In this document: one piece after another, positions 25,601-57,000 of the stretch | How the letters are laid out: every line of letters begins with the position of its first letter | How positions within the stretch are numbered: the stretch's first letter is position 1 | Assembly (NCBI RefSeq): GCF_052425735.1 | Contig: NC_135758.1 | Span: 12,710,001 to 12,774,000, forward strand | Reading direction: 5' to 3' | DNA: 64,000 nucleotides | Source of the DNA: Oculina patagonica | Lineage: Eukaryota | Translations under genes and position numbers: made by a program | The notes under the pieces: generated by a model | The model's input: only the letters and a program-made list of their open reading frames with translations | What the model was told of the DNA's origin: nothing | Databases searched by the model: none

Positions 25601-28594
25601 AGAGGGTCATTAGTTGTGTAGACACAAGGAATACCTCAGTTAACGAAAGCTTCTGTAAACACAGAACAAAGCCACCAATGACTGAACCATGTTTTGCTGG
25701 TTCCTGCAAGGCTGACTGGGTTGTAAGCCACAAGTGGTCACAAGTGAGTGTTTGTATTAAAACAAAAAACAAATCGTGAAGTGATTGCTATGCTAAGACG
25801 ACTGCATATCAGCAACCAGACTTAGTCTCGTCACTTTTTCCCCTTATTAAGAGTGCGTTCCTTTGGGATGATCGGATCAGGATCAATGATCCGAGATCAC
25901 TCGGGTAATGGTGCATTCAAAGGTACCGATGGACCGGTGTCAAGAGCAGATTCATTGGTTCCTTTTGTGCATCATGATTTGAGTGATCTTATCGGATCAT
26001 TGATCCTGATCCGGATCATACCAAAGGAACGAACCCCTAGCTCAGTCGAACCTTCTGTAAATTGGCACCCTTGGGTCTTTCCTTTCCGTTTGGCCCACTT
26101 AGTCTATTCTGCCCATTCAGTCCATTAAACTAGTCAACGATACATTGGTTCTGCACATTCTTTTCATCATCCATTCGCATGTGCACATCTTTTGAACCGC
26201 CCATTAACCCGTTGTCAACTCAATCCATTCTTTCCCTTCGTTTTACTTAGTTCAGCCTGCTAACTCCAAATTACTTCTCTTTACACACAGTGTTCAGTGC
26301 CTTGTGGTAGAGGACAACAAAGTCGACAAGTATTCTGTGGAAGAAAAGGAGGTGATGCCCTTCAGTCAGACAAATGTTCCCATGTCAAGAAACCAAGCTC
26401 CACCAGGCCATGTAACAATGGAAAATGTCAGGCAGTCTGGGTAGCATCAGAGTGGAGCAAGGTTAAAACAGTAACCATTGGTTGACAATGATGAACATAT
26501 TATTTTGGTGTTTTTTTTGTTTTTGCTTTACTTATCAGTATCAAACAAGGCAAGTTAATCTGTCGAGAGGTCAGCAATAACGTTATTTTAAAGTATTCAG
26601 ACAGTGAGTGCGCGATGCAGTCGTTGCGTCACATAGCCCACAAATGACCACTGCTCACCACTAGAGTTCTCAGTAGCTCAGTGGTTAGAGCTTCCGACTA
26701 GTGTACGGAAGGTCGTGGGTTCAAATCCCATCTGTTCATATTCTCCACACATCATTCCATAATTATTATTATTAAAGTATTCAATGTTGTATTCAAAAGC
26801 CACTTGGTGAACTTTATCGTTTCTTTCGGTACCGAATCGAAAAAAAGTGTAACTTTTGCAGTTGTGCATGGTGGAACCGGAGGAAACACGTTTTAGTTCA
26901 GTCAATCAAGCTTTTGTACATGACGATGAAACACAAATTTGAACTCCTAAACCAGTGCACACCTTAACGCTGTTTTACATTCACCTTACAGTGTTCAGTT
27001 GAGTGTGGAACAGGGACTCAATTCAGAACGGTGTTCTGTGCAGGGGAGGTTGGTGGCATGTACCAGGAATTTCCAGACGAGTCTTGTCCACGCAACTCTA
27101 AGCCAACAACAGTTCAATCGTGTGGAAACAACTCATGTGCGCCACAGTGGTTCACTACAAAGTGGGGAAAGGTACACTTCAACTGTTTAATCTCTGTGTT
27201 TTCTTTATAAGTGTCCTTTAGTTCTGAATATGTTTGCCAGTTAAAAGCATTTGGCGCACGGCCCCAAACCGAAAAATACACCCTATTCAAGGGAAGGAGA
27301 AGCGTTCCGTGACGACCCAAAAGCGGCAACCGCGCACGGCCAAACACAAATCTTTATAAAATCGTTACTAATACGAACGGGATCAGTTTTAAGATGCCTT
27401 TTTCGTTTATCTGGGCGTTAAAAGCTGAAGAAAAGGACCCATCTAAGGATCACACCAGGAACAAAATGCCAAAAGGACCAAAAATGATACCCTATTTAAG
27501 GACCGAAAACCTCAAAAAACCATACCCTAACGGGCGGCACATACTTATATAGCCCATATATGGGAGTACCCCCCCCCCCCCCCGGGACAATTTCCCATGA
27601 CAAAAAGAAGAGATGCATCTTCAGCTACTACTACCTATCTACAAAATGTACGCGTAACTTCCAAACCCCGCGGCGGAGGAAGAAGCGATTTAGGAAATAA
27701 AAATATTAAGTTGGCAAAGACAAAAATAGAGTAACAATAAATACAAGCGAAAAATGACTAAGCCCAAGCTAAGGAGGAGCAGCGCCTGTCTGCATCACTA
27801 CAGGGCAAGGTAGAGTCCCATTCTGTTACTATGTTTCCGGAAGGTAGACAATTTAAGGCACCGCCGCTGGAAAGGAAGCATTACAAAGTATCATCTCCTT
27901 GCAACTTCTGAGATAAATATAAAGTGTGGAGGTTTCATGTATACATACACATGTACATACTTCGCACCTTCCTGACAAAGCAGTGTGCATAAGTCGTGCT
28001 CGCATCTTTGATATACACTGTGGGAGTACCCCACTAAGGAAGATCCGACATAATCCACGAACAACATCTTCACGGTAATCGGTGTCAAAAGTAATCAGTG
28101 GTGACGTTTCTTTTAGTGTATCATAAAAGTTCTCTTGAAGAGAATTCAAAGATTCTTTTTACAAGTGAAATTTGATTGGCCAAAATGCAAATGTTTTCTT
28201 TTTGGACCGTCATTTCAGCATATTTTACGTGATGGCCAATTACATGTACATGTAGAAGTTTAACGTGCTACAGTACGACATATTTTAAACTTGTACTTCC
28301 ATCCATCTTTTTCAGTGTTCCAGATCATGTGGTGGCGGTACCCAGACACGAGACGTTATGTGCCTGGACCGAAATGGGCAAGTGTCTAAAGAGTGCCACT
28401 CCAAGAACAAACCATATCACTATCAACGCTGTAGTAACACGCCTTGCCCTACATCAACTGCACAAGTAAAAGGACAACAGAACTGTAGAGACTCTTACAG
28501 CGGCAATGTGTGCATGTATGTTATACAAGCCAACTTCTGCCAGTTTTCACATTACCGAAGAATGTGTTGCAACAGTTGTGCAAGAAGGCACTGA
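13646..28594 (+). CDS. ADAMTS-like secreted ECM protein (ADAMTSL4/THSD4-like): signal peptide, TSR1, Cys-rich, spacer, 6 further TSRs, PLAC; ~761 aa after correcting a 1-nt frameshift
   Basis: Hand-spliced GT-AG coding exons: 13646-13714 (MWIVLLWTALLGLISQCATQSFQ signal peptide), 16054-16151 (WGPWSDWTPCTQSCGGG), 16698-16803, 20505-20628, 21104-21240 (CELNC..DGTPC..CIDGTC), 21607-21718, 22253-22339 (IPAGATNINV), 22889-23064 (YYINGNW..AGPTSEDL spacer), 23726-23944 (frameshifted), 24591-24720, 25115-25337, 25570-25743, 26291-26461, 26992-27171, 28316-28594 (PLAC, CCNSC, stop). Intron phases are all consistent except at exon 9. No metalloprotease domain. Confidence 0.92.
18834..19100 (+). CDS. Candidate alternative first coding exon (own signal peptide) of the ADAMTS-like gene
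   Basis: ATG in GCAATGG context, hydrophobic signal-like MANVNPGLLMIVLLSAVGCRA, 89 open codons, then GAA|GTAGGT donor at 19100/19101 in phase 0, matching the phase-0 acceptor at 20505. Confidence 0.55.
24055..24160 (-). mobile_element. Degraded copy of the same SINE family
   Basis: AAAAACCCGGAGA..GGACGAAAACCAACA..AACTCA..CCACA matches 60785-60850. Confidence 0.55.
25851..26037. mobile_element. MITE (PIF/Harbinger-like ends)
   Basis: Inverted arms CGTTCCTTTGGGATGATCGGATCAGGATCAATGATCC / GGATCATTGATCCTGATCCGGATCATACCAAAGGAACG. Confidence 0.7.
26664..26734 (+). mobile_element. tRNA-derived SINE head / tRNA-like sequence
   Basis: TAGCTCAGTGGTTAGAGC (A box/D arm) ... GGTTCAAATCC (B box/T arm); no convincing acceptor stem. 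Confidence 0.55.
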
Positions 28595-30124: not shown

Positions 30125-30624
30125 TGCAGTTCTATCTATTAAATAGTAAAAAAGAAGAGAAAGAAGTACAGAAACAAAACTGAGCAAGAGATAGTGTACA
30201 TGTACATGTACTGTATACTCAATCAGTTTATTCTTATGGTTTATTTTGAGAAACAGAAAGGGTTTTCAGTTCAATTCTGGTCAGATGTGGAAAATTAACA
30301 ATAGATTCATATTACAATACATGAACTGTAGGTCGTTTTAAGTTCTTTTAAACAAGTTGTAGTCATTATATTAGTTTTATTCCATTAAAGCAATCTGTTT
30401 GAGGGACACTGTACAGTAATGTATATTACATATTATTACCTTTCTTATGAAATAAAAAAATAAATGACACTGAATGCCTCAATAGTGCAGTTTTCTATAA
30501 TTATAATTTTGACAAAATGGTTTGCATACAGTATTTGGGATATAAAATATTAAGGTGTCTTCAGCATGCACTTGTCCTCATCCTCTTGGTAATAAAATGA
30601 GCTGGTTCTGCCATTCTTCTTTGT

Positions 30625-30704
30625 AAATCAAGATATTTTGTACCTCCAACTCTTGACTGTCCCACAATTGGGGTTTTATCAAAAGTCTTCATGATCCTTG
30701 ATTC
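30625..30704 (-). promoter_or_regulatory. SECIS element (type II) in the 3' UTR of the C18orf32-like gene
   Basis: Minus strand: helix I AAUCAAGG (30703-30696) pairs with UCUUGAUU (30633-30626). Core AUGAA (30692-30688) faces GGAG (30647-30644). The 10-bp helix II GACUUUUGAU/GUCAAGAGUU is fully paired with WC and GU pairs. Unpaired AAAA at 30677-30674, then an apical CCC...GGG minihelix. Confidence 0.88.
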
Positions 30705-30767
30705 GCAAAGATTTCCCAGATGGACTTGACAAGTTGATATGCAGGTGCACTTGATTATTACAAGTTC

Positions 30768-30851
30768 CTATTCAGACTTTGCATGGCCATCTACTGTAAC
30801 CTCTTTAGCAGGCGAAACATCCGCTTTTAGATCACCATTGGGTAGTAACTC
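30768..30851 (-). CDS. C18orf32: C18orf32/UPF0729-like protein, exon 2 (terminal)
   Basis: Acceptor tttttctcttactcag|GAG in phase 0; encodes ELLPNGDLKADVSPAKEVTVDGHAKSE then TAG. Total protein 74 aa, close to the ~76 aa I recall for human C18orf32. Confidence 0.78.
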   Translation of the reverse strand, partial: ELLPNGDLKADVSPAKEVTVDGHAKSE

Positions 30852-31462
30852 CTGAGTAAGAGAAAAATTCTTGTAAACAAGTAAAGTATACTCCTGACTA
30901 CTTTTACTTCAGTCAGATTTAGTAGCTTGGTACCTTATTGTGCAAAATATATACAACAACTTAATATTTACAAGTTGGGATCATTTTGTGTAATATTTCC
31001 TTTATAAGATAAGCTACTGTGGTTTTTTTTTTCAAAGCATCATATTTTCACTATTTAAAAAAATAATAATACATGTATACAAAAATTTCTTAACAGATAA
31101 TAATTATTAGTAACAGTGAGTAAAAGTCATCGTAGTCAATACATCAAGTACTCAGGAAAGAAAGGGAGTGAACACATGTAAACTGTTTACAAGGAAAGTA
31201 AAAGAGATCTGAAAATAAAACATAATTTAATTCCATAGACACTACTCTGGAACAAACCCCTTTTGTTCAGGGCATGTTCAGGGTTTTCATTAAGTTTTTA
31301 AGTATGTAGGAGGGGACCAATCGGTGAGTAGCAGGCAGAAAAGATTTTGACTTTAGTTCAGTGAAAGTAAGCAGGTACTACAGCTGTAACTGTTGTGTAC
31401 CCTGGTATTGGTACCCGTGTCCCACCTTCTAATGAGAACTCTGAAAACTGTTGTCTTGGTAT

Positions 31463-31611
31463 TGTGCTGTTCCAGAAAATATCTATACCCCTCCCAAAGA
31501 AGGTTAGGCTCCATACTTTCCTTTAAAAGTTTTGGCTTTTAAGAACCGCCATCCCCTCAGAATTTCCAGTGAACTTCCATGGGCTGGGTATGGATATTTT
31601 TGAAACTGCAC
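31463..31611. mobile_element. Short MITE in the C18orf32-like intron
   Basis: TGTGCTGTTCCAGAAAATATCTATACCC / GGGTATGGATATTTTTGAAACTGCACA imperfect TIRs. Confidence 0.6.
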
Positions 31612-32260
31612 AATCTCAATGAAGAACAAACTCTGACATAATAAATTCTGCTTGCAACGAACACATTTTGTGCTCCCAATGCTAAATTTCTTGCACATTT
31701 TATTGGCCATTACAAACATTGACATTAAAACCAGTAGAGTGTTCTTACATTGTATGCATTGCTGGGTGCATATAACTATATATAAAGATGACCAACTAGT
31801 TGGCATTAATTTTGGCAAGCAGCCTGATAAAACCTGATTTATGCTGTATTGTTGCATGTGTTAAAACAGCCAGACACCTCCACTATAACGAACATTTTGT
31901 TAACAACACCACTTAGCAGATGTTCGCTATATCTGAATCATGACACAACGAACATGGGATAAAAACACTGTCCCTCATTAGACAGTATCACCATGTATTT
32001 TTACATGTATGTACCTCTGTCTCAATCTATAGGTACATGGGAGGTGTGCACACATGGCAACTATATAACTTGCTTGACCAAATAACTAACCAAACAAAAA
32101 TACTGCTTTTTTGTACTCGTCTGAGTAAAGTTGAAAAAAAAAATTATATATAAATTAAAAACAAATAATTATTATTTGGTCGGATTTCGTAGAGGGGCAC
32201 TATACAGTGTATCCCTACATTACTCTCAGTAAGTACTGCAATGAATTTGTAAAGAACAGG

Positions 32261-35158
32261 CAGTGCTCGACACTAACTTTTTTGGATACTAGGCAATTGG
32301 CTAGTAAGTACAAATAATCACTAACCCCGATCAAACCGGTTACATCAAAAACCGGTATATTGGTGAAAATGTTCGTTTAATTTCTGACATCATGAATTAC
32401 ACAGACGAGAACAACATTCCTGGAATCGCCCTTTTTATAGACTTCAAGAAAGCTTTCGATACCATTGAATGGGAATTTATTAACAGCTGCCTTAAAAAAT
32501 TCAATTTCGGACCTGACATTCAAAATTGGGTCAAAATTTTTTATAACAATGTTTCAAGCTGCATTCTCAATAATGGATTCGCATCAGAATTTTTCACCGT
32601 AGAAAGAGGTGTAAGACAAGGTTGTCCCTTGTCCGGACTATTGTTCGTAATTGGCATAGAAATACTCGCGAGAGCAATTAAAAACGATACCACCATAAAA
32701 GGCATCAATGTAGGTGAGAAAGAAATTAAAGTTTCTCTATATGCAGATGATACCACTGTTTTTGTATGTGACCTGGATTCTGTTGACCACCTGCTAACTC
32801 TACTTGATAAGTTCAAAAACCTCTCCGGCTTAGAAATTAACACCACAAAGTCTGAAGGAATGTGGCTTGGTCAATGGAAAAATAATGCCGAAACTCCTTT
32901 TGGCTTCCGCTGGCCCCAATAAAAGCTCTTGGTATTTTCTTTTCTTATGACACAAATAAAACTAACGAGTTAAACTTTGCAGAGAAAATCCGAAACTTAG
33001 AAAAGACGCTTAACAGTTGGAAAAGAAGAAATTTAACACTTTACGGGAAAATAAACATTGTTAAAACTTTTGGACTTTCTAAATTAATCTATAACGCCTC
33101 TGTTCTTGTCATCCCAGAAAAATTTATCAAAGAGATCGAGAAATTAATATTCAACTTTATTTGGGATGGAAAACCCGCAAAGATAAAAAAATCAACTATC
33201 ATCGGTGAGAAAAAACATGGCGGACTCAAGATGACTGATTTTGACATAATGAATAAAGCTTTAAAAGTCGCTTGGATACCACGTTTGCAAACCAGAACTG
33301 ACGCATCCTGGAAGATTATCCCCGAGATTGCGTTGGAAAATTATGGAGGACTGTCTTTTCTGACACACTGCAATTATGATATCAATTCCCTGCAACTTAA
33401 CCGCCTCCCAAGTTTCTATCACGAAGTCTTAAAACATTGGCAAAGCACAAAACAACCTTTTCAAAACGTTACATCTCCACACAATGAAATAATTTGGAAT
33501 AACCGCAACATAAAAATCGAAGGCAAAACACCTTTTTATAAAAACTGGTTCGAAAAAAATATTCTACGTATTAAAGACCTTCTTCAAGACGACGGTAATT
33601 TCCTTTCTTTTAATCAATTCTCCGAAAAATTTCATCTTGAAACACCTTTCACTTTATATTTCGGATTGATAAATTGCATTCCGTCGAATTGGAAATTAGC
33701 AATAAAAAGAAATCCCCGGCAAATGCCGGAAAATGAAAATACAACTAATCAAATCTCTACCAAAACCGTCTACTCCGTTATGATAAAAAACGCCTTTTTA
33801 CCCCCCACCGCTGAAGGCAAAATCTTAAGGTATGGTTTTAATCCAGCAAACATAAACAGAGTTTATGAATTACCTTTCCAGATAAAAAATGACATTAAGA
33901 TATCAATGTTTCAATTCAAGATTATTCATAATATTCTTCCAACAAAGGTTAGCCTTTTTAAGGCCAAAATATCGGATAATGACATATGCCCTCAATGTCT
34001 CACTGACAGACATTCTTTAGATCACATGTTTTTGCACTGTCCTTCAACTTTAGCTTTTTGGAAGTTATTTCAAAATTGGTGGTCCAGCAAAACTAAAGAA
34101 AATATTACCTTATTAAACTCTATGATTTTATATGGAATTTTTGACAACAAGATTCACATGTACGATTTAAACTACACGCTTCTTATTGCTAAGTACACCA
34201 TATACTGTAAAAGCTTACACGAAGAAAAATTATGTTTCAACAGCTTTCTCGCACTCTTAATGGACAAACTTAATATACAAAGAGAAATTGCCATACAAAA
34301 TAACAGTCTTAATAAGTTCAATCAAACATACGGAAATCTCTTGTAATTTTTTTTTTTCTTTTATATTTTTTCCTTTTTTTTTTTTTCTCTGTGCATTATT
34401 CTTTTTTTTTAAAAAAAAAAAAAAACTAAATTCTTTTGTCGTAACTTGTTTTTTTTTCATTGTAACTAAATATGATAGTTATATGCATTGTTCAGAAAAA
34501 ATTATAATCTCAAGTAGCTGATCTCAATATCCTGTAAAACGCTTCTGTTATATGTACGCTGTATGGTCTATTGTAACTTAATCTTGTAAATACTATCAAC
34601 ACTAATAAAAAATAAAAAAATAAAAAAATAATAATCACTAGCCCACAAGGACAAATCACTAGCCCCACCTCCACCCCTTTAAAAGAAAATTTAAAAAAAA
34701 CGAGTTTGAATCAGCTAATCTCTTAGCGCTATATTTGTTTGAGTCCACACAAGTACAACTTTTCTTCACTGAGTCGCAGCAACGATGCTATCTTCCAACT
34801 CAGTTGAGAATTTCTTGACTGTGGATTTTGTCCCAGGTCCCTTTTGAGTGTCATGGAAGTGAGGACAGAGGGTCTTTTCCAAGATGGCGTCAGGTTTGCG
34901 AGTTGATCGTACGATATAAACCCGTATGCGATGTAGGTCGCAAGCCCTCTTAGTTATCTGGTTTAAATTACTTAAGCTATGGAAACTAGATCCTGATGAA
35001 GGTTTCTAGAGAATAACTTCCCAAGTTATAGAGTTTTAGTTAATTTATTTTTCCACGAATCTCACTAGTCTATGGGCTAGTAGGATCGTACTTTTACTAG
35101 CCAAGCATGAAATTTTATTAGTCCTGGGCTAGTGTACTAGCGTTAGTGTCGAGCACTG
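32261..35158. mobile_element. Non-autonomous TIR DNA transposon with 5-bp TSD (hAT5-like), interrupted by a LINE
   Basis: Perfect 17-bp TIRs CAGTGCTCGACACTAAC (32261-32277) / GTTAGTGTCGAGCACTG (35142-35158); flanking ACAGG at 32256-32260 and 35159-35163. Confidence 0.85.
32324..34629 (+). mobile_element. 5'-truncated L1/Tx1-clade non-LTR retrotransposon (ORF2 RT and C-terminal zinc finger), frameshifted
   Basis: PDQTGY..DFKKAFD..GVRQGCPLS..YADD; frameshift near 32918; CPQC..H...HC motif; A-rich tail 34604-34629; 11-bp TSD AATAATCACTA at 32313-32323 and 34630-34640. Confidence 0.93.
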
Positions 35159-35822
35159 ACAGGGATGATTTGTATGCTGATATCAGGGTTACAATGCATG
35201 TAAAAATAGTGTAGGGTTTATCAAACATTAATAATTATTGAATCAATCTGCAATTAAATTTGTCCTCTTGGAAATGTGCCATAAATGTAAAATATTTGGG
35301 GGTTTTCCTGAAAGACTATGCGACATTTCAGAGCATGAAATGAGAGCAGGACCTGAACGTGTACATGCATGTGATCACAGAATAATACAAATTTTATGGT
35401 GTTAAAACGTACATGTATGTTTATCTGCAATTATTATCAACTATTAAAACTGCTTATTTCATGCATTTGTGGGCACTAAAACGTTTTGAAAAGGATATAA
35501 AAAAGTTCATTAACAGATTTGATTTTAAAGAATTCAACAATCATTCCAAAGGCCAATATAAATAATATCTACCACATCATTGCCATAATTAAGTTTAACT
35601 TTAACCACGTATGATGAAATTTATTAAACTTGTCGCTACGTGTAGTTCAATCACGCATGATTTTCAGTATAAGCATTGTTGTTTGCACACAAGAATTAGT
35701 TAATCGTAGTCAGAATTCAGTGTAAATTCTAAAAAAGAAATAAGCACAGTTATAAGCCTTTCTGCCAAGATTAAAGCTTTTTACAAAGCCAATATATCTT
35801 CAGTGAACGTGACGAATCTTAC

Positions 35823-35963
35823 CTTTTCGTCTGATTTTAGTTTATCATCTGTTTTGCCACTTTCGAGTTTCGGTTTTCCATACCATCTGTCGATCAGCGG
35901 CTGAATGAACTTGTGCCAGATAAACAGAAATACTGGCACAAGTATACACGATATTCATACCAT
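35823..35963 (-). CDS. C18orf32: C18orf32/UPF0729-like small membrane protein, exon 1, with in-frame TGA (putative Sec) at codon 3
   Basis: Minus strand reads cttcaaaATG GTA TGA ATA TCG TGT ATA CTT GTG CCA..., i.e. MV(U)ISCILVPVFLFIWHKFIQPLIDRWYGKPKLESGKTDDKLKSDEK, then an AAG|GTAAGA donor. This matches the family N-terminus as I recall it (human [22 protein letters not shown]). Confidence 0.88.
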
Positions 35964-36099
35964 TTTGAAGAAAGAAAAACGCTTTTTCCCTCTCAACGAA
36001 AAAACTTCACAACGTTTCCTGTATCTCTGCTTCTTTTGACTGAAAACAGGCGACAACGCATGCTCTTTACTCGACGCCGAAATCAACGCGGGCTCAGTA
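35964..36099. promoter_or_regulatory. Bidirectional promoter / 5' UTR region between head-to-head genes
   Basis: Only 136 bp separate the minus-strand ATG (35963) from the plus-strand ATG (36100); the region is locally CpG-enriched. Confidence 0.7.
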
Positions 36100-39000
36100 A
36101 TGGAGGCTGCATTGGTAAGTTTTTCGTCTTTACGATGTCAGTTAATTTTAAGCTTTTTTGGATGTTTCAGCATTGTTAAGAGTTTTTATATTTTTGTGTT
36201 ATTTTAGGAGGCCTTGAGATCGGTCTCCGAAACAGATCAGGCCAAAAATGCTCTTTCTTTGATGCAAGTTTATGTCAACAACATAGTGAAAGATCCAGCG
36301 AATCCCAAATACAGAAAAATTCGAATAAGTAAGTTAAGTTAATGCTTAGCCTCAATGACCGGTCTTCAATTACCGGTACACGTAGGACTGGGAGTGGTTA
36401 TTAAGAAAAAGGTCTGTCTCTTGCAATATATGGATATAGCTATAATTACATGATGTATTTGTTTGAGACCTTGTTGCATGAGTAATAACCCGGGTAATAA
36501 TCAGCTGAGAACAAAGTGCTCAAGCTACAGTGTATTGGAAGAGGGGGTGGCTGGGTATGGAAGTGAAGAGGTGAACATGATGTTTCTCTTATTAGGAGGT
36601 GGGTGCAAATTTCTTTTGGCCCTTCAGTCCTATATAATTTTTCAACAAAAGGGCAGTAGCAGGTCTTGACAAAGTGCACCAGCAAGTCATGTGAGCAATT
36701 CTGGTTAGCCTAAATAACAGATTTGTTAGCCTAAATAGTACTCTGGTTAGCCTAAAGTTAGCTTACAATAGGGAGCTTGCAGTTAGCCTGGCATAAGGGA
36801 TTTCTGACTCGCCGCATGGCTTGTGAGTCATGCAAATGGTCAGTGTAAAACATAAAACACAGACTGGGGTATAAATGGCAGACTCAAACTGCGGACTAGG
36901 TATAAAATACGGACTACAGTATAAAATGCGGACTAAGCATGCAAACTGCTTGCAAACGTGACCTGATGGTAAAAATAACCATAAGCATGACTGTAAGCAT
37001 AAAAAAGTTGACTCACCTCGACCAAATTAGCCTTTTTCCTGCAGAAAGCCTGCTCGTAGGTTACGGCAAAGTACTGTCAAAACACCTTAAAATTCCCTCC
37101 AATTGTGCCGGAGGAGCTTAAAATTTGTTTTTGTTTCATTCGCTTTAGTCTTCAATTCTTGGATCGGAGTTGCAGTGGAGACTCGACAGATAACTTAAAC
37201 CTCCTGCTAAACTCGAACTTTTCCGATTCCCCTCCAGGTGTTTTTTTTTTTTACTTATATTACCCTCGCTAACTCGAACTCCTGATATCTTGAACCTTTT
37301 TCGATCTCCCTTGAAGGTTCGAGTTATCGGGATTCAACTGTATATCTGGCCAGCCTCAAGCGGCAGTCATGTGAGAATTTGACAAACAACCTTACTTTGC
37401 ATGACAAAAAAACTGGGTCAGACGTTTTTTCCCCGCATGTTTTTCTTCTGCCAATAGAATTTTTTAGCCTCTTCAGTACTCGAAATTTCGTGCCTCTTTT
37501 TTGGTATTACGGGAGTGTTGAAATAAGCGAATGGCGAAACGTGAAAAAAACTGTGTGTTAGTGTAGCGAAAATAAGCAAATTCGTACCTATCTGTTGCGT
37601 GAAGCCAGACGATAATACACTCAACATTTGAGTTTGGAACCGGAGTTTTGAATCGCGATATTGAGCTGCCATTTAACAAGGAATAATTCATTTCGAGGAT
37701 GGGATGTTGAAGAAAAAATAAAATAAAATTTCTAAACCAAATAATTTACTCTTGAGAAAAACCCTTTTGTTGTTTTGACTGTAAGGGGTACCATAAGGTA
37801 GCTTGTTTTTACTGTATTAAGGTACTTTGCTGAGGAAGATCATAATTGTTCGTTGTGAATCCCTACGAGGTTCAACGGACGACGAAACATTAAACTTTGA
37901 ACAGGAATTATTCACTCTCTTCGGTAACAAACATCAACGCAATACGAGCAGACAACGATTACAAAGGTCACATGAAGCCGTTGCGCTACATGGGGTCATG
38001 CGCACAGTTTTGGCGCGAACAATAATAATTTTATGCTCACGTATACATCCTTGATGGGATCTCATTATTTCTAGCTGTGGTTCGCTTTTAAACGCATTTT
38101 ATATGCTTAGTACGCATTTTATACTGTAGTCCGTGTTTTATACCTAGTCCGCTGTTTGAGTCCGCATTTTATACCTCAGTCCGTGTTTTATACCCAGTCC
38201 GTAGTCCGTAGTCCGCAGTCCATGTTTTAAACTGACCGGTCATGCAACAACCTCGTTCCCAGGGTCTCTCTCTCACCGCCCCCAAGAGCGAGAGGGGCTC
38301 TTGGGGGCGGTGAGAGAGAGACCCTGGGAACGAGGTTGGTCATGCAAATCATGCGAACCATTCTGGTTAGCCTATAAATAGTACATTGGTTGGCCCAATT
38401 AGCACTTGGGTTAACCTAAATGGCACTCTGGTTAGCCTACAGTTAGCTACGGTTAGCCTTTTATTGCTTCCGTTAGTTCTTCCCCCTGGTGGGGAATAAG
38501 GCCAGAGCCTTTTATAGGGTTTTGGGATATGTAAATACTATGTAATTGTCGTGTCTTTCGTGCTTAAATGCACGTGGGCGCGATTGGCAACGTAACTCTG
38601 AATAATTCCGTGTTTTGCATGCACGTGACATTTTTTGATTTTGGGAACGAGTATTTTTGACTTTGTAATTAGATTGGGAGCGGTTAGTTAGTTCGCGAAG
38701 TTCGCGAAGAAAGTTACGAATTTTCAGAGAGTTTCGAAGCGAAACGTAGGACGAAATGTAGGGCTGCGTAGACACGCATGGCTTAGAGATGTACGTTAGC
38801 TAAAAAACTATGATACGGACTGGACTGGCCATGAAATTCACATTCTTCGAAACTCTGTGGATTCGTCGAGATTCTACCGATGAATATTTAATTTCTGCGA
38901 AATGGAGTCGCACATTTTGGCCGAAGATGATCATATGCGGGAACAAATGGAGCCCCCAGAAAGAATTACGGCTTGGAAAAGATCGAAAGCTGGTCATCAC

Positions 39001-42000
39001 GGTGAGACGACGAAGATTTGTAGCCGTCTGGACGAAGTGCTCAAGGATTATCGCCATGCTGGCGAAGTAATGGAGCTTAGTCGTCGATTGAAGGATCAAT
39101 GGTCAAAGTATTGTTTTGTACACGAGCAACTTATGAAGCATTTGCCTGGTGAGAGAGAAAAGGCGGATGAAAGCGATCGTTTTGATGATCGAGCTCGAGC
39201 TTATGAAAGATACAGTTTTCTGATCGAACAATTCATGACTCGTACTAACTTTACGAATGGAGGAACGGAAACAGTTGTTACTAAAGACCGTTCTAATCGT
39301 GTGGAAGATGCACGGAGTTCTGTTTCGGGCGGTTCTCGGAAATCCAGGCGTTCAAGTCGTAGTTCAAGTTCAAGGTTACGTGAAAACGCTGCAATTGAAA
39401 GCGTAATGGCCGAAGTGAGATTGGCGCAATTAAGGAGAGCAAAAGAGAGAAGATTGGAACAGCAAATGTTGCAGTTGGAGAATGAAATAGCTGACGCTGA
39501 AGACGAGGCCAAGTTAGCCCGAGTAAAAACCCGATTTTATGAGCAATTGGATTCAGAAACGTCGAGCATCGATGATCCACTCGCTGAGCTTGAGGTAGAG
39601 AAGGGAAGGCAGCATCTCGATCAAAGAAAGGATATGCCTGAGCCTTAGCCACGCGTCTTTGCCCCAAAACCAATACCCCCTGAAAAGATCTCAAGTTCGA
39701 CTAAGGATCCCAATGTCCGCCCTCTTGCTCAGCCTAAAAGGGAGTATGGTGGATCGTCTGAGAAAGTTACAAACACTGACAGTATTCTTCAGAGTGTTGT
39801 CACCAATATGAACTTGATTGCGACCGGGGCGACCTTGCCCCCACTGGAGGTAGTTAAGTTTTCCGGAGATCCAAGCGAGTTCTTCAAATTCAAGGCACGT
39901 TTCCATCAAATGGTGGACTCTCAGAATCTGTCTGATTCGCAAAAGATGTCTCGTTTATTGCAGTTCCTCGAAGGCAAAGCGAGAAAAGCAGTGGAAGGGT
40001 TTGAAGGCATGCCCGGTGGAGTTAGGAAAGCCGTGCGATTACTTGAGGTACGTTTTGGCCAGCCTCACATGATAGTGAAAGCATGCGTTGATGGTTTAAT
40101 TGAAGGACCAAACATTTCGAACAGTGACAAAGAAGGCTTAAGAGAGTTTGCGGATCGTAGCAGGACCTTGTATGAGACTTTGGTTGCAATGAATGCTTTG
40201 TCTGAGATGAATCTCACCAATCTGGGAAAAATGGCGGGAAAGCTTCCTACTGCGCATCAAGCTAAATGGAGGGACGAGGCTCAGCGGATCCGTGAGCGAG
40301 GGACACTACCAAGTTTCAAAGACCTGTTGGAGTTCATTGAGAAACGCGCAGATGCTATAAACGATCCAATCTTTGGTCGAATTGGAGAAACAAGCAGAGC
40401 TCCGATCAAACCTGGCAGGAAAAATCCCAAAGTGCCTAGCGCGCCTGGAGCCGAAGGTAAAGTGACAACGCTAGCAACGCAGCTCACATCTGGTTCACCT
40501 CAGCAGAAGGATCCACGCAATACAGGCCGATCAGCAAAGTGTATGAACTGCCAGGAATCCCACTACTTGGAGGATTGCGGTAAATTTAAGAAACTAACTC
40601 TGAGACAAAGAAAGATTTTCGTTCGAGGAAGAGGGCTTTGTTTGAATTGCCTGAGGAAAGGACATTTGGTTACTCAATGTGTTTTCAAATCGAAGTGTAA
40701 CCTGTGCTCACAGAAACATCATGTCCTCTTACACAACGCTGCGTCGGATTGTGTTGATTCCCCTTGCCAAAGCCAGGAACAAGTATCTGCCAGCGTAATG
40801 ACGGGCGATGGTAGAACCTCAGGTTCTCCTAGTCAAAACCATGATCAAGTTAAAGTGTCTGCGAACGTAATGACAGCTGAAAGTGGTACATCCAGTGTCC
40901 CCACCTTTGACCAAGCTGCCAGCGGCATCGCAACGGTCAGCGTGGTGAACTTTGCTAAGTCTGCATCTTACAAAGCATGCAGCCAGACAGCCTTTAAGTC
41001 GCATAAAGTTGCCCTGCAAGTGGTACCTGTGAGACTGGAGGGGGAGAATGGGCAAACGGTGAACACATGGGCGTTGCTCGACACGGGAAGCGAGGATTCC
41101 TTTATTGCCAAACCTACCGCTGACCAGCTAAGTTTGAGAATAAAGAGTTTCGAGTCGTTGGCGGTGTGTACCTTGACTGGCGAGACAACTGTGCGTGTAG
41201 GCAAAGTGGACCTAGTAGTCTTACCAATAGAAGATTCAGAAGGCCACCGAATTCAGATTCACGACGTCAAGGTTGTTGAGAATCTCAATGTGAGCTCGTC
41301 CAGACCGCAGGACTTGTCGAAATGGGAACACCTAAATGGGATAGCAATGCCAGAGATTGACGAGGAAGAAGTTACCTTGCTTATAGGAGCAAACGTCCCT
41401 GAAGTTCAGATACACGAAGAAGTTCGCGTTGGAAGAGCCGGAGAACCGTATGCTGTCCGGACCCTTTTGGGGTGGTCCATTCTGGGACCGCTTAACAGCA
41501 GCATTGGAATAACATCTGACAAAGTAAACGTGAACTTTCTAAAGTATGGTAGCCAGATGTTGGACCAACAGATGAATCAGTTTCTTGGATTTGAGAACAC
41601 TGAATGCATTAGTAGCAGTAAGAAGGGGATGTCAGTCGAAGATCGAGAATCTTTACACAAGCTGAACAGTTCTGTTCGCCTAGTAGACGGCCGTTATGAG
41701 GTCGGAATGCTCTGGAAGTACGAAAATCCGTGGTTGCCAAACAACAAAATGACCGCCGAAGCTAGACTTCGCTCTCTGAAAAGAAAGTTGTGCAGAGAGG
41801 AGCAGTTGCTATGCAAATACCGGGACTTTATGGACGACCTTTTGGTAAAAGGCTATGCTAGAAAGCTGACCGAGGTGGAGGCGGAGGCTCGAAGTCCCAG
41901 GACGTGGTATCTACCGCACCACGGTGTCTTTCACCCGCAAAAACCGGGGAAAATTCGAGTAGTATTCGATGCAGCAGCAAATCATGATGGAGTCTCCCTC

Positions 42001-45000
42001 AACAGCCAGTTGAATCGAGGGCCTGATTTAACGAACAGTCTGTTTGGTGTGTTGCTGAGATTCAGACAGGAACGCATCGCTCTTGTTGCAGACATACAAT
42101 CCATGTTTCTTCAAGTGAAAGTACCTGCTGAAGACGCTGACGCTCTCCGTTTCTTGTGGTGGGAGGAAGGCGATCTAAATAGACCTCCTGGGGAGTACCA
42201 GATGGTCCGTCACATCTTTGGCACTAAAGATTCTCCGAGCTGTGTAAACTTTTGCCTGAAAAGAACCGCTGAAGATAACAAGAACGACTTTAGTGAAGAA
42301 GTCGTTAGGGCTGTCCAAGAAGATTTCTACGTTGACGATTTGCTGAAGGCTGTGGAGACGACCAGTAAGGCAATTTCACTGGCGCACGAATTGATGTCTC
42401 TTCTCGAGAGGGGCGGATTTCGTCTGACTAAATGGACAAGTAATTCTCGTGAGGTGTTAGCCAACATACCTGAAGATAAACGAGCACAGCCAACTCTCAA
42501 CCTGGATTTGGATCAGCTGCCGATCGAGAGAGCGTTGGGAGTCCTGTGGAATATCGAAACAGTCTTAAAGCCAGACAAACCAGCTACGAAACGAGGTATC
42601 CTGTCGACTATTAGTTCCCTTTACGATCCTGTGGGTTTCGTTTGTCCAGTGGTGCTAGAAGCAAAGAAGATTATGCAGCGGCTGTGGAAACTGCAGTTGG
42701 ATTGGGACGATCCTGTCCCAGAATTTGAGCTGGCCCACTGGGAACTTTGGAAGTCTGAATTATCAGCTTTATCGCAAGTTCAAATACCAAGATGCTATCT
42801 CCAGCTACAAGGAGAAGTAAAGGAAATCTCTCTCCACCAGTACTCAGACGCGTCAGACGAGGGTTACGGCATGTGCTCCTATCTGCGGTTCGTTTATGAA
42901 GATGGGTCCATTCAGTGCTCGTTTCTGGTTGGTAAATCAAAGACGATGCCAGTGAGAGCTATTTCAATCCCAAGGCTCGAGTTACAAGCTGCAACGTTAT
43001 CTGCCAAGATTTATCAAGTTTGCAGGGATGAGTTAACCTATCCAACTACCTTGCAGTACATCAAGAACAAGAACTTCAAGTAGTTTATAACCGGGCGGTT
43101 AATGTTGGACCACTTCTTTCAGCGTTTTGGCTAGAAAGGCACGGCGCCGCTTTGTAAAAAAAAAAACTTTAGAAAAGCAGTCACTTGAGAAACACACAAG
43201 CCGTGTTTGCGTCAGTCACGGAGTGTGCGTGACATGAATTTTCTTTATCACGTCATCTCCTGTTTTAAACCACATGCCTGGCCGGATAAATTTCTGCTTA
43301 CGCATGCAGTATTTATTTTGTTCCGGATGTTGAATAAAATAAACCCAAACCAGTTGAATGACATTAAAGAGAAGTCCATTTCACGCCAAAATAAAGACTA
43401 GACTAAGGCCATCCCGTTGTATTTCTTCGTTTAGCGTCGTCTGACGACTTAAGTCCGCGGTTTGCAAGAGTCACGGGGTTTGCGTGAACTGTAGCAGTGA
43501 GCGAAAATTCTCTTACTCACGTCATCCCTTTCTTTAATAAACTTGCATCAACAAATTCCTGCCTGTGCTTGCAAATTTTTATATTGTTCCGAATCTCAAA
43601 CAAACTACACTCAAACCACTTGAATGGCATAAATTGATTTCGGTTAAAATTAAAGAAGCTTTAAAATCAAGTTCTTGAAGTTTAACTGCTATTTCCCCCA
43701 AAAAAAAACAGCTTTCAGAAGCATTTGGGAAGTCGCGTGATTCGAAGCACGTAATTCTAACTGGGAGATTCGCTAGGTAATTCCCCTTTTCGTGATGACG
43801 TGTGTCCTGTGCTTTGACAAATTTTTGCTGGGTTTGCAATTTTCGTTTCGATTCCAAAAATAAACTCAAAAACACTTGCAAAACACACGAAAAATAATTC
43901 ATATTTTCATTTAAAACTAGTTTGGACATGTCAAATCGCAACGCGAATGTTCAAGCCCTGAGCCAAACGCTTGAATATCAATTTAATGAACAATCGCCAG
44001 AAACATCAAAATTTGCGTGACCGTGACCTCCTTCTGGAACGATTTACCGACAAAAAAACGACAAAAACAAAACCCCAGGCAGATTATGAACCGGGCCCAG
44101 GCCCCGCCCGGTTAATGAAACAAGGCGTTTCAACACCTACGTAGCTAACAGAATTGCTGAAATTCGTGAGATTACCAGGCCGGACCAATGGAGACACTGT
44201 CCTGGAAGGTTGAACCCAGCCGACGACGCCTCGCGTGGCTTAAAGCCTAAAAGGTTATCAAGTCAGCATCGCTGGTGGAAAGGACCAGAGTACTTGTGGC
44301 AATCGGAGAACAACTGGCCCAAAACTGAGATTGGCGAAGTTCCACATGACGATCCTGAAGTTCGAAATGAAGCACAAATTCATTCAATCAGGACTGTAAA
44401 CCCTTACGTTAGAGTTCACTCAGATGCTCGATGCGCGAGCAAACCGACCGTTTACGAGATGATATCGCACTACAGCTCTTGGTTTAAGTTGCAACGTTAC
44501 GTTGCTTGGCTAGTGCGATTCTGCTACTGGCTAAGGTCCCGGGAAGTCTCCCCAACGACACGAACACTAACCACGGAAGAGTTAGAAGAGGCAACACTGT
44601 TTCTCATGCGGTTGGTTCAGGCTGAAAGCTTTGCAGAAGAACTGAGAGACCTCAAGGCCGGCAGGGAAGTGAAGACGTCGTCCAACTTGTAAAGTTGAAA
44701 CCGGTACTGACGGAAGGAATTCTTCGTGTCGGAGGTCGCTTAGAGGAGGCAGTAGTGCTGTCGTATAACGAAAGACATCCCGTAATACTTCCAAGGAACC
44801 ATCACATCAGTCAGCTGATCGTCCGTCATTGCCACGAAAGTTTAGCCCATGCCGGCAAGGAGCAGACCCTGGCTCAAACAAGGAAAATGTTCTGGATTCT
44901 CGGAGGCAGAGGTTTAGCAAAGAGCACCATTAGAAATTGTGTGAAGTGTCGCAGATTGAACGAGAGGCCTATGAAGCAGATTATGGCTCCCCTTCCTAGA

Positions 45001-48000
45001 GAGAGATTAGAACCATACAATCCGCCCTTCACGTTCTCTGGTGTCGACTTTTTCGGTCCACTAATGGTTAAGTGGGGCCGCGGTTTAGCAAAGCGCTGGG
45101 GATGCATTTTCACTTGTCTGTCCACGCGAGCTGTCTTCCTCGAACTTGTGCCCTCACTGGAAACTGACGATTTCATCATGGCCTTGCGACAGTTCATTAG
45201 CCGAAGGGGTCCTCCCAAGGAAATTAGATCAGATAGAGGCACTAACTTTGTTGGCGCGGAGCGCGAACTCAACGAAGCCATCGATAGGTGGAACCACGCA
45301 AAAATTTGCCAAGAATTGCAACAAAAAGAAGTCAAGTGGACCCTTCATCCCCCAGCAGCACCTCACATGTCCGGGGTCTGGGAGCGACTAGTGCAGACTA
45401 CCAAAAAGCATCTGAAGGCTGTCGCAGGAGATAGATTGCTCGGTGAATTTGCGTTGCGAACACTGCTAACTGAAGTGGAATCCATTATGAATAATCGTCC
45501 AATCGTAGCAGCATCAGATGACCCTGCCGATTTGGAAGCATTGACCCCCAATCACTTCTTGCTGCAAAGGAAGGTGTCTGGGTTGCCACCAGGGCTTTTC
45601 GTCATGGAAGACCATTTGGGCAGGAAACAGTGGAGAAAGGTCCAATACCTAGCCGACGTCTTCTGGAAGAGGTGGATTAATGAATATCTACCGAGTCTGA
45701 CTGAAAGAGGAAAGTGGTTAAGAGACCAAAGGAAGGTTAGAGTGGGCGACCTGGTTCTCGTTTTGGAAGAGAATGTCCCTCGCAACAAGTGGACTGTGAG
45801 GGAAGAGATTCAAAGGTGCGATCCGCTAAGGTGAAGACTTCAAGCAAGGAGTTGCTTCGTCCAATCGTGAAGCTGTGCCTATTAGATGGACAGGAATGAA
45901 AGACACTTACGAGGATTAACAAACGCTTAAACTTTGACGTTTGTGGGGCCGCTGTCGTGTCTTTCGTGCTTAAATGCACGTGGGCGCGATTGGCAACGTA
46001 ACTCTGAATAATTCCGTGTTTTGCATGCACGTGACATTTTTTGATTTTGGGAACGAGTATTTTTGACTTTGTAATTAGAATGGGAGCGGTTAGTTAGTTC
46101 GCGAAGTTCGCGAAGAAAGTTACGAATTTTTAAAAGAGTTTCGAAGCGAAACGTAGGACGAAATGTAGGGCTGCGTAGACACGCATGGCTTAGAGATGTA
46201 CGTTAGCTAAGAAACTCTGATACGGACTGGACTGGCCGTGAAATTCACAGTAATTCTGGTTCATGTGGCTAGCATGCCTCACTGGCTCGCCTATTGTACA
46301 CACTTGGCAGTGGCCCCCTTGACCAACCACTGTATACCTGTATATCTAAAATACACATTTAAAAAAAAGAATTTTAGCAGTCGGAGTTTCTATTTAAATA
46401 CATGTACCGGTACATTAATTTTGATTGTTGTCAATACTCACTGATCAATGTTCTGCCTTACTATAACTAGGTAATCCAAAGTTCAATACAGCCATCTGGC
46501 AGCTGGAACAAGCAAGGACATTTTTGTTGTTTTCAGGATTTGAACAGGTGCAATATTTGAAAATACATGTACCCCGGTATTTGATTTTAATTTTCATGTA
46601 GATTGTTGTTGTTGTTGCAGGACAGTCAACTTTCCATCTGGTGTCCATAAAATAGGGGTTTTAGTATATGAGGTTGATATAGGCACGCAGTGACGTACAT
46701 AAATGTAGTAATTTGATTTTCATGTACTTCTCTTTGGTCTTATTCCAGGAAGGGGACTTTTTAGTTCTTCCTTCTTCTATAAAACTAGATGGAGCCAAAC
46801 TTTTGATTGATGAAGCTCTTGGCATTTCACCGTCAAACCAAACAAGCCATGCCAGTACCAGTGCTCCTTCAAATACAAGTCAACCTAGCAGCATGCTCAA
46901 GCTTAATGCAGCAAAAGGTGGGAATATTGATCAGCATGTTAATAAATGCTGCTTCTCTTTTTGACCATTTAAATTACCTCATTTTCCATTTGCATTTAAT
47001 TACTTGCTCTAAATGCCAAACAGTCACTATCCTCTGTTAAGGGGCATCTCCCATTTAGCAGTCAACTCATTTTTATAGTGGACACAAAATACTATACAAA
47101 ACAATAAAATTATAACATTTGATGTCATGTATATGAAATGATTGACAAGTGATAAAAGTGATAAAGTGATAAATGATCATCACAGCGAATTTCCAATTTT
47201 AACATTTTAACACATCTATTGTCATTTTGACTTGATAATGACGTTAGCCTAACGTTGAAACGTCGTCGTTTTTAACAAACTTTTTAGCTTTCTTAATATG
47301 CTTCGAAATATTTTATCGCATTTTTTTATAGTTAAAAATAACTGCAAAGTCAATTACCAGAGAGGTCCGCTTTTAGGCTTGGCTAAATCTATTTAATGAA
47401 ATGATAATAAAATGATGTTACTTAATTATTGTTATTGATTTTTCATCAGACTGTAGCTTGTTTGATCAAGATGTGAAGGCAGATCTTACATTGCTTTCCT
47501 ACATGAAAGAAATGGGTATGCTTTAAAACACTCTCCTGAAAGCCTTATTTTGATAAATAATAACTAAGTTTTATAAATTCTCTCCCCTTTCTCCTTGCAA
47601 TATCAAACATGAATGCAGTGTTACAGCAAGGAGGTTGTGTCAGAACTCTATTTTAATAAAAGGTGATGTGCGTTGGCTTGATTCAATGCCTTGTTCTTAG
47701 AAGTAGTTTTGAAATCACTTCATAGCGATCAGTAAAGAAATTAATATAAAATTATCCTTTAGCTGAAGTTTGAATGGTTTAAACTACATTTACTTTTAAG
47801 TACATATTAATTAAAAAAAACAGTTTGAATCATTTCAAGACAGCATTATTTCATGATAATTTTATTGTACTTCATTGTCCCAACTGCCCCATGTAATGGG
47901 CAAAATTAATACTTGCAAGGCATTTGTTGATGCAGATTTGTTACACAAAATTGTATGGTGTAAAGGGCCTTAATGTTGTTTTACTTGAAGGTTACGATGT

Positions 48001-54000: not shown

Positions 54001-57000
54001 ATGAGTCGGTCCACACTCCCACTCATTGGAAGCGATGAAGGACTCCGTGCTGACCTATGGGACGGCATTATTGAAAACGTTTCAAAAACGCCTGTTTGCA
54101 GGTTGTAAATCGTTTGTAACTGTCTGTCTTTGTCTTCTGTTTTCCCTCTGTTTAACAATTCTTTGCCTTTTCTTTTAGTTAACAATTAGACTACGCGCCC
54201 AAGTTTTCTAAGAGTGAATAGCCGACGAGGTACGGTCGAGTTCACTTTCGCTCATAGAAAGCGAGGGCGTGTAGTATAATTGCTGTAGTTGAGTCTCCAA
54301 AGGAATACAGTCCAAAACCTACAAAAATCGTGATTAATTTTCCCTTAGCATTTAGAAGTTTATTAGAGTTTGCTTGCCTTGTGATAACTTTATAGGTTGC
54401 TTTTACTTTAAAGCAAGGGCTTGGGGGTGGTGCTCGTTTTGTTAATTGAATCCCTGTGATTAACGTCTTTCAATTTGGTGAACTGGGTTGTAGCGTTTAA
54501 GCTCGGAGAAAATTAAGTCATGTCTATCCTTACTTCCTTCCCTAACCTTCTATTTATTAACATGCTATTTTATTTAAAAGGTGTTAAAGTACCAACAAAG
54601 AGTCACTTCACTGCCCACATTTAAACTCTTTTGGAATGAAAAGGTATTCGATATTTGTTAGTTATGATCTCTCTATATTAAAACGAACTTGTTAAATTTG
54701 CGAATTGCACATTCCCGATCGATATGGAAAGGCACTGAGCTCCCACTTTTATGTCAATAGCCACCCTGGGAAATTATTACATGTGAGTGGCCGTTAATGC
54801 GAAGTAGCCGTTGGTGTCCATTGTACTTATGTAGAGAGGTGGTCGTTGGGACGTTTCAGTAGAGTATGTCTATGGATTTGCGCGGTCGTTTAGTCGACCA
54901 CACGATCGAATGTCTTCTGTATAGTTTTTGTAGTTCTGGTTTATGTATGGGTTTTGTATGGTTTGTGTATGGATTTTATATGATTTGTGTATGGTTTGTG
55001 TATGGATTTTATATGGTTTGTGTATGGTTTTTATATGGATTTTATATGGTTTATGTATGTTTTTTATATGGGTTTTGTATGGTTTGTGTATGGATTTTAT
55101 ATGGTTTGTGTATGGATTTTATATGGTTTATGTATGGTTTTTATATGGATTTTGTATGGTTTGTGTATGGATTTTATATGGTTTGTGTGTGGTTTTTATA
55201 TGGGTTTTGTATGGTTTATGTATGGTTTTTATATGGGTTTTCTGTATGGATTTTATATGGTTTCCCTCGCGGCTTGCTCCAAATTCCTCGCGACTCCGCG
55301 GTTCCCTCTCTTTGCCGTTCGCCGGCCCGTCTCAAAGCAAGCACTCGCACTCGAATCCCGCCAGCTACGCAGGCTAGGTTTATGTATGGTTTTTATATGG
55401 GTTTTGTATGGATTTTGTATGGTTTGTGTATGGATTTTATATGATTTGTGTATGGTTTGTGTATGGATTTTATATGGTTTGTGTATGGTTTTTATATGGA
55501 TTTTATATGGTTTATGTATGTTTTTTATATGGGTTTTGTATGGTTTGTGTATGGATTTTATATGGTTTGTGTATGGATTTTATATGGTTTATGTATGGTT
55601 TTTATATGGATTTTGTATGGTTTGTGTATGGATTTTATATGGTTTGTGTGTGGTTTTTATATGGGTTTTGTATGGTTTATGTATGGTTTTTATATGGGTT
55701 TTCTGTATGGATTTTATATGGATTTTATATGGTTTGTGTATGGTTTTTATATGGTTTATGTATAGTTTTTATATGGGTTTTGTATGGTTTTTATATGGGT
55801 TTTGTATGGTTTGTGTATGGATTTTATTTAACAAAATAATTAATAAAGAAGCCTAAGCCATGTTTTATACTGTCATAAAACACGACGGGCAATTGAGAAC
55901 ACGAGGGAAATGTAGAAAACATGAGCCGCAGGCGAATGTTTTCTACATTTCTCGAGTGTTCTTCAAATGCCCGGAGTGTTTTATGACAGAATAAAACATG
56001 GCTTAGGCTTCTTTATTTGCTTTATGATATAGATTTTAGACACCGCGAGTGAAAAGTTTAATTAAAAATATGTACAACAAGAGCGAGTAAACGAAGACGA
56101 AAAGCAGAAAATAATTTACGGGAAGACCACAAAACTGACACAATTTCATTCAGTGTTCGACGTAAAATAAGGCTAAGCATTTCAGATAAGTTTGTTACCT
56201 TTCAATCTCGATCTTGTCTTTTTGAACTTCAATAAACTTCACCGACTCTGAGTGCAATTTCGTCTCAGCATAATTTAGTAGTCTCGATGACATCCGTCCC
56301 TTGCTTCGTTCGACTTAAAAACGCGTATAATTTCCAGAAAAGCTATTGCTTCGGATCTTCCCGTAAACCTTAATTGCTGTCACAATCAAGTTCCAGTATG
56401 AAAAGACGATTTAAGACGAGATTGTCGAAGAAAATCTTCGAAAGAAAACTCTCTCGCTCGCTTTCCTCAGCTTTCCTTGCGAGTTTCATTCAACTCAAGC
56501 GGTGAACACCGCGCCACAATTTTTCCCGCCTCACTTCGTTTACATCAAAATGAAATGTCCAGTGGATTTATACTTAAAAAAGGAATTTAAAAAAACAATT
56601 ATTCCATTCGCCCTTGCTGGATACGAGTGGTTATAGCCAACGAAAAGTCAAAGACGCGCGAAGCACTCGAGGAAAGCTGACGAAAAACAATAAAACATGA
56701 TTTTTCTATGTTTTATACTCTGATAAAACATAGGTTTTTAGCCAATCAGAGCGCGCGTAGACTCCTATCTATATTATAAATGGATTAAATATGGTTTGTG
56801 TATGGATTTTATATGGATTTTGTATGGTTTGTGTATGGATTTTATATGGATTTTATATGGTTTGTGTATGGATTTTATATGGATTTTATATGGTTTCTGT
56901 ATGGTTTTTATATGGTTTATGTATAGTTTTTATATGGGTTTTGTATGGTTTTTATATGGGTTTTGTATGGTTTGTGTATGGATTTTATATGGATTTAATA

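Follow-up and report, generated by a model that had tools for sequence, protein, structure and literature searches.

In eukaryotes, UGA is recoded as selenocysteine (Sec) by a route in which SECIS-binding protein 2 (SBP2) acts at the AUGA/GA core of a SECIS element together with eEFSec and Sec-tRNA(Sec). The thioredoxin-like CxxU selenoproteins of the ER, such as SELENOT, are small, membrane-associated proteins with a Sec-x-x-Cys-type redox pair, and an exchange of Sec and Cys classically marks a redox cysteine as catalytic. The consensus of the SECIS core is UGAN/KGAW, and SECISearch3 searches for the element with its own models at a threshold of 10 (PMC3753652). Human C18orf32 (UPF0729) is a 76-aa protein of the ER and lipid droplets (PMC12797721, PMC5800811) whose molecular function was unreported in 2018; a single haploid screen on GPI-inositol deacylation picked up both it and SELT, independently (PMC5800811). 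A 2025 functional study of C18ORF32 mentions neither cysteine nor selenium (PMC12797721), and PMC5800811 is likewise silent on selenium and on N-terminal cysteines. The C18orf32/UPF0729 family is not listed in a 2012 survey of metazoan selenoproteomes, and few new families have emerged (PMC3473315). Our literature search returned no paper linking C18orf32, UPF0729 or DUF4512 to selenocysteine beyond the co-occurrence of SELT in that screen; other journals or supplements may hold one.

We analyzed a 64,000-nt stretch of the Oculina patagonica genome (the window), in which the first-pass annotation had proposed a canonical type II SECIS hairpin on the minus strand at 30625-30704. Very probably, this hairpin is a genuine signal for selenocysteine insertion, located in the 3'UTR of a coral gene for a small membrane protein. 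Its parts, all on the minus strand, are as follows; counts of invariant bases refer to 13 aligned elements from three lineages, and R1 is a covariance model of our own, both described below.

30619-30710, minus strand: whole SECIS element with extended lower stem (RNAalifold consensus of 12 orthologues; R1 score; conserved island)
30710-30705 with 30624-30619, minus strand: lower-stem extension of six pairs, CUUUGC with ACAAAG
30696-30703, minus strand: 5' strand of helix I, AAUCAAGG, pairing with 30633-30626 (MFE fold, RNAalifold)
30689-30692, minus strand: 5' core AUGA, invariant in 13/13 aligned elements and placed in the AUGA columns of SECIS_1
30678-30687, minus strand: 5' strand of helix II, GACUUUUGAU, 10 bp with 30657-30648 (MFE, RNAalifold, covariation)
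30674-30677, minus strand: unpaired AAAA, the conserved apical A motif, beginning 11 nt past AUGA
30661-30672, minus strand: mini-stem (helix III), CCCA-AUUG-UGGG, with CCCA/UGGG pairing 30672-30669 to 30664-30661 (MFE, RNAalifold)
30648-30657, minus strand: 3' strand of helix II, GUCAAGAGUU (MFE, RNAalifold, covariation)
30644-30647, minus strand: 3' core G-GA-G, its GA (30646-30645) invariant in 13/13 elements
30643-30634, minus strand: variable linker of 10 nt, in which the RNA-run variants at 30635, 30636 and 30642 fall
30626-30633, minus strand: 3' strand of helix I, UCUUGAUU (MFE, RNAalifold)

The first-pass parse, with all its parts and spacings, agrees exactly with the minus-strand letters, and its span leaves one spare base at each end. 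The minimum free energy fold of the 101-nt RNA has the SECIS architecture at -27.3 kcal/mol, compared with a shuffle mean of -16.4 (z = -3.47; 2/200 shuffles as good), and helix I comprises 8 bp plus the 6-bp extension in both the MFE and the RNAalifold folds. The presence of the CCCA/UGGG mini-stem assigns the element to form 2 (type II). The AAA is invariant in all 13 elements and matches the AAA columns of SECIS_1 without indels. The hairpin was also found by a rule-based scanner that looks for ATGA, followed after a single base by a helix of 9-12 bp (no more than one mismatch), then AA, an apical portion and N-GA; its background is 0.1 hairpins per shuffled 64-kb window, counting both strands. 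An AT-rich hairpin at 47396-47439 (plus strand) passes this crude scanner as well; it is reported by neither SECIS_1 nor R1 and is probably a product of chance.

The comparison with Rfam gave a match in register at a low score. The gathering-threshold scan of the 64-kb window contained no SECIS match, and a permissive scan of 701 nt placed SECIS_1 at 30695-30640 with 17.9 bits and E = 1.7, short of the gathering score of 35, which is the curated threshold of one model and not a biological feature. AUGA, the 10-bp helix, AAA, mini-stem and GA are aligned in register, with no indels in the core. Because the E-value of 1.7 spans 4227 families, the expectation for SECIS_1 alone is about 4e-4 in 701 nt. 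Such a score, below threshold and in register, thus neither confirms the element by Rfam's curated standard nor favors chance. At E<=10 a permissive scan of 13 loci (20.5 kb) yielded no orthologous element reported by SECIS_1, since E-values grow with the length searched and with the number of families, 4227. At the K-GA-W positions of the consensus, K is G, but the W position holds G in the window copy and its nearest relatives, and A or U in 7/13 aligned elements (L005, L006, L011, L012, L013, L014 and L017), and the bases around the 3' GA read GGAG, UGAG, GGAU, GGAA, UGAU or UGAA. The form-2 architecture of the earlier description therefore stands, while "canonical" slightly overstates the case for an element with a GGAG 3' core and a sub-threshold Rfam score; the Infernal check against SECIS_1 that it had named bore out the register and fell short on the score, at 17.9 bits versus 35.

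The hairpin lies in the 3'UTR of a gene with the following minus-strand layout.

35823-35963, minus strand: first coding exon, M-V-TGA-ISCILVPVFLFIWHKFIQPLIDRWYGKPK...SDEK, matching Pfam DUF4512, with its GT donor at 35822
35955-35957, minus strand: in-frame TGA at codon 3, after ATG (35963-35961) and GTA, reading ATG GTA TGA ATA TCG TGT
30852-35822, minus strand: GT..AG intron, with the joint 30850|35822 seen in RNA; it holds an opposite-strand retroelement fragment
30768-30851, minus strand: last coding segment, ELLPNGDLKADVSPAKEVTVDGHAKSE, of 27 residues, with the TAG stop (30770-30768); it matches the C-termini of proteins P0001-P0010
30376-30381, minus strand: poly(A) signal AATAAA, lying some 245 nt 3' of the hairpin; conservation peaks locally here at 0.64

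Pfam DUF4512 (PF14975, C18orf32/UPF0729) matches the 44 residues that follow the TGA with 34.1 bits (cutoff 27; profile positions 3-27), and the coding sequence downstream of the TGA contains no methionine and no in-frame AUG. The SECIS lies 76 nt after the TAG stop. From the U of the UGA to the A of the AUGA the spliced mRNA measures 294 nt, close to the distance of about 290 nt first estimated, and the minus-strand AATAAA sits 3' of the hairpin at 30381-30376, where it had been placed.

RNA runs carrying the same species label (X1, X3 and X21) place both the TGA and the hairpin in a spliced, polyadenylated mRNA. One X1 contig and one X21 read cross the splice joint 30850|35822 (GT..AG, minus strand), and contigs from X1 and X3 cover 35823-35991, at depths of 32 and 704, and agree with the genome at the TGA. 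Further RNA contigs, tiling 30250-30733, span the hairpin, and poly(A)-library reads fall almost entirely within 30250-30641, 3' of it. Polyadenylation upstream of 30704, which the first-pass annotation had named as an outcome that would speak against the hairpin, is thus not what the RNA displays.

A protein search with the sequence past the TGA gave 13 close homologues, mostly on Logan assemblies of RNA runs. In all 13 the gene call starts internally, at a GTG or ATG shortly past the TGA position. ATG-GTA-TGA-ATA-TCG-TGY is present in 12/12 close orthologues whose contigs extend to this point (in L003 an adapter interrupts the contig at the TGA). Counting three more distant relatives (L014-L016), ATG-GTA-TGA is kept in 15/15 relatives' contigs in which the start region can be seen. 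The ISCIL codons past the TGA vary only at synonymous third positions, and the 5'UTRs upstream of the ATG diverge.

An exhaustive search of representative proteins returned three kinds of entry: some with the TGA read as Trp, more distant truncated forms, and forms with Cys. The Cys-forms, P0022-P0027, include one that groups with a protein of Daphnia pulex. They begin MVC-I(S/P)C; their residue 4 aligns with the first residue past the window's TGA, and their Cys3 with the TGA itself. The in-frame UGA has the pattern of a Sec/Cys pair: homologues have Cys opposite it, and the sequence is conserved to either side. The gene calls P0014, P0015 and P0019 read the TGA as Trp (MVW-ISC, MVW-VTC), apparently because a genetic code with TGA as Trp was applied; in P0019 a true TGA stop is also read as W. 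All database entries found for TGA-type genes are either truncated at the TGA or have Trp there, so coral annotations of this DUF4512 gene need correcting. The earlier view that the hairpin is independent evidence for a genuine TGA holds up: RNA contigs of two runs contain the codon, as do 15/15 relatives' contigs, and it corresponds to Cys in distant homologues.

The hairpin itself occurs 55-82 nt past the stop in each close orthologous UTR. Across 10 orthologous coral 3'UTRs, identity to the window is 0.81 for the element and 0.85 from AUGA to GA, compared with 0.54 in the flank before the element and 0.42-0.52 after it. RNAalifold on 12 orthologues returns the SECIS architecture, with lower-stem bases that change in pairs, and helix I changes across the coral clade from U-A to A-U, between GC and GU, and from CUUUG/CAAAG to CUCUG/CAGAG. 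U.U mismatches occur in helix II of two orthologues, three adjacent in L002 and two non-adjacent in L003. A second ATGAAGACTTTTG word occurs in L001 and L008; the L008 copy was rejected as a further element, since nothing but the word itself matches there.

Taken together, we put at roughly 0.9 the probability that the hairpin is a functional form-2 SECIS element of a coral C18orf32/UPF0729 orthologue that recodes the UGA at codon 3 as Sec, with SBP2 binding and Sec insertion deduced from its features. If the hairpin is a real SECIS element, the TGA at codon 3 is most likely Sec. The best-surviving alternative is that the conserved 3'UTR structure has another role, in stability or localization or as a kink-turn for another L7Ae-family protein, and that ATG-GTA-TGA is a two-codon uORF followed by a non-AUG start, for example at the GTG. 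All database gene calls beginning at GTG or ATG past the TGA would fit such an arrangement, as would the sub-threshold Rfam score and the indirect nature of the case for Sec insertion. We nevertheless regard it as improbable. MVC-I(S/P)C in the Cys-forms is exactly co-linear with ATG-GTA-TGA-ATA-TCG-TGY; the five codons from the TGA to the GTG vary only synonymously, whereas the 5'UTR above the ATG diverges; a downstream in-frame AUG is lacking; and the hairpin's invariant bases, spaced as in a SECIS, are exactly AUGA, AAA and GA.

The surroundings of the gene in the window contain several mobile or repeated sequences. The host intron contains a fragment of a non-LTR retroelement, antisense to the gene: two ORFs at 32392-34346 (plus strand) that match RVT_1 (91.5 bits) and zf-RVT and are partly covered by RNA contigs. 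A 1091-aa ORF at 39808-43083 (plus strand) points to an LTR retrotransposon of Pao/BEL type, since it has DUF1759, aspartyl protease and Peptidase_A17 domains; a neighboring 248-aa ORF (38902-39648) has no Pfam match. Between the DUF4512 gene and this retrotransposon, 36680-38470 looks like a foldback or TE-like structure: it contains an inverted repeat whose 42-nt arms match perfectly across a 7-nt spacer (38248-38338) and a 127-nt inverted repeat pair of 82% identity (36852-36978 and 38065-38191), with GGTTAGCCTAAAT-like direct repeats on both sides. Coding-like sequence on the plus strand lies at about 36060-36330, upstream of the DUF4512 gene. An Rfam tRNA match of 45.8 bits at 26671-26734 (plus strand) covers model positions 5-66 only and may represent a shortened tRNA or a repeat derived from one; ARAGORN reports no tRNA in the whole window. 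From 54001 to 58000 the GC skew is +0.30 to +0.38 and the AT skew -0.26 to -0.30, a strand bias that suggests a strand-asymmetric repeat.

SECIS elements occur in some Penelope-like retroelements (PMC8557442), and a locus rich in retroelements, with the intronic RVT_1 fragment and the Pao/BEL element at 39.8-43.1 kb, invites the idea that the hairpin arrived on a mobile element and landed in the UTR by chance. This is very unlikely: R1 finds one sense copy in the 64-kb window, the element occupies the orthologous place in every species sampled, and no repeat was found across 30250-36100.

Two divergent relatives extend the comparison beyond the close orthologues. In L014-L016, which are 57% identical, the gene begins ATG GTA TGA GTA ACG TGT, and an element about 427 nt past the stop contains AUCAAG...CUUGA, AUGA, GAAAA, a GCUG/CAGC mini-stem and UGAU; its helix II, GCGUUAUAAA/UUUGUAAAGC, differs from that of the window, and helix I is also present in the L014 element. 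In L017, whose contig begins past the TGA position, an element 31 nt past the stop reads AUGA-C-AGUUUGUGGA-UAAAG-...-UUUACAAACU-UGAA, with a CC/GG mini-stem. L014 and L017 therefore keep AUGA, AAA and GA with their spacing on entirely different helix II sequences. The L017 source is a 309-nt contig (GCA_046553695.1, JBHLFW010000672.1), and UniRef labels its protein 'Salmonella sp. s54925'; as the contig encodes a eukaryotic DUF4512 protein and carries a SECIS-like hairpin, the bacterial assembly is contaminated or mislabelled.

SECIS_1 matches the L017 element with 15.7 bits and gives no match in L014 780-1500, where the element came from the rule-based scanner and from R1 with filters off. 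R1 was trained on the close clade only. It gives the window copy 108.9 bits, a score on a row that is itself training data, and it picks the L017 element with 18.1 bits (E about 0.1); with filters off, the L014 element ranks top in a 1.7-kb UTR with 15.4 bits (E about 0.01). Both tools that located the L014 element reward pairing, and a chance match in 1.7 kb is expected about 1e-3 times.

We measured covariation in a MAFFT alignment (A4) of 13 elements from three lineages, over the 13 pairs of helix II and the mini-stem. An alignment made with R1 (A3) had been dropped in favor of A4, as it contained antisense echoes of the near-palindromic lower stem and two stray matches. In A4, standard pairs occupy 94.7% of cells, compared with 33-59% when partners are slid by 1-3 columns. 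Seven of the 13 pairs change on both sides, the compensatory changes coming mainly from the two divergent sequences (L014 and L017), and 0/500 shuffles reach any of five measures. Helix II alone is paired in 95.4% of cells, with 5/10 pairs changed on both sides across the three lineages, and the mini-stem in 92.3%. Single-sequence folds are insignificant on their own for L017 (z = -0.70) and L014 (z = -1.02), so that support from these two rests on register and covariation and not on folding energy. Conservation of core and helices in orthologous UTRs, with compensatory changes that include helix II, is what the first-pass annotation had proposed to look for. Short AU-rich ATGA/GA hairpins do occur, as the one at 47396-47439 that passes the crude scanner illustrates, but a functionless look-alike arising by chance is effectively refuted by conservation and covariation, given a conserved island amid a poorly conserved UTR, pairing that beats both shuffle and slide controls, the same architecture in two divergent relatives and the small single-family expectation in 701 nt, and we hold it to be exceedingly improbable.

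For the SECIS element that we favor, a mechanism can be proposed along the established eukaryotic route. The UGA of the AUGA core and the 3' GA would form a sheared G.A/A.G tandem, and the resulting AUGA/GA kink-turn core would be bound by SBP2. SBP2 would then recruit eEFSec and Sec-tRNA(Sec) to ribosomes at the UGA of codon 3, 294 nt upstream. The predicted product would begin Met-Val-Sec-Ile-Ser-Cys, a UxxC motif, before a hydrophobic helix.

To our knowledge, a UGA at codon 3 lies far nearer the start than in known selenoproteins, and we have no precedent to cite. The hairpin is the evidence that makes this odd TGA a credible selenocysteine. If the assignment is true, SECIS-directed recoding works at the third codon, with the ribosome barely past initiation, and the gene offers a natural test case of how near the start codon Sec recoding can operate. 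C18orf32/UPF0729 would also join the short list of animal selenoprotein families. On balance we lean, by a little, toward the broader view that C18orf32/UPF0729 is an unrecognised animal selenoprotein family, in which stony corals and at least one distant relative encode Met-Val-Sec-x-x-Cys, marking the human N-terminal CxxC as redox-active; the Sec/Cys swap would then be a functional clue for human C18orf32.

As an RNA element, the hairpin is of an ordinary kind, and the novelty lies in its host gene. With form 2 of Rfam RF00031 (SECIS_1; PMC3753652) it shares helix I, the internal loop of 5' AUGA and 3' GA, a 10-bp helix II, A's at 11 nt and a mini-stem, and with eukaryotic SECIS elements in general a position in the 3'UTR and an in-frame UGA, here 294 nt away. 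Unlike the RF00031 standard, the Oculina element lies below the gathering threshold and has G at the W position (GGAG). The coral product resembles human C18orf32 in its DUF4512 match, its N-terminal hydrophobic or amphipathic helix and its disordered acidic/basic tail, and the coral gene has TGA where DUF4512 Cys-forms have Cys3, a comparison made with P0022-P0027 and not with the human sequence. The predicted coral protein is also like the SELENOT-type proteins, with no homology claimed, in being a small membrane-associated ER protein with a Sec-x-x-Cys-type pair. In contrast to them, it is a helix-plus-tail of about 70 residues for which no thioredoxin fold is expected, and its pair would stand in UxxC order at the extreme N-terminus.
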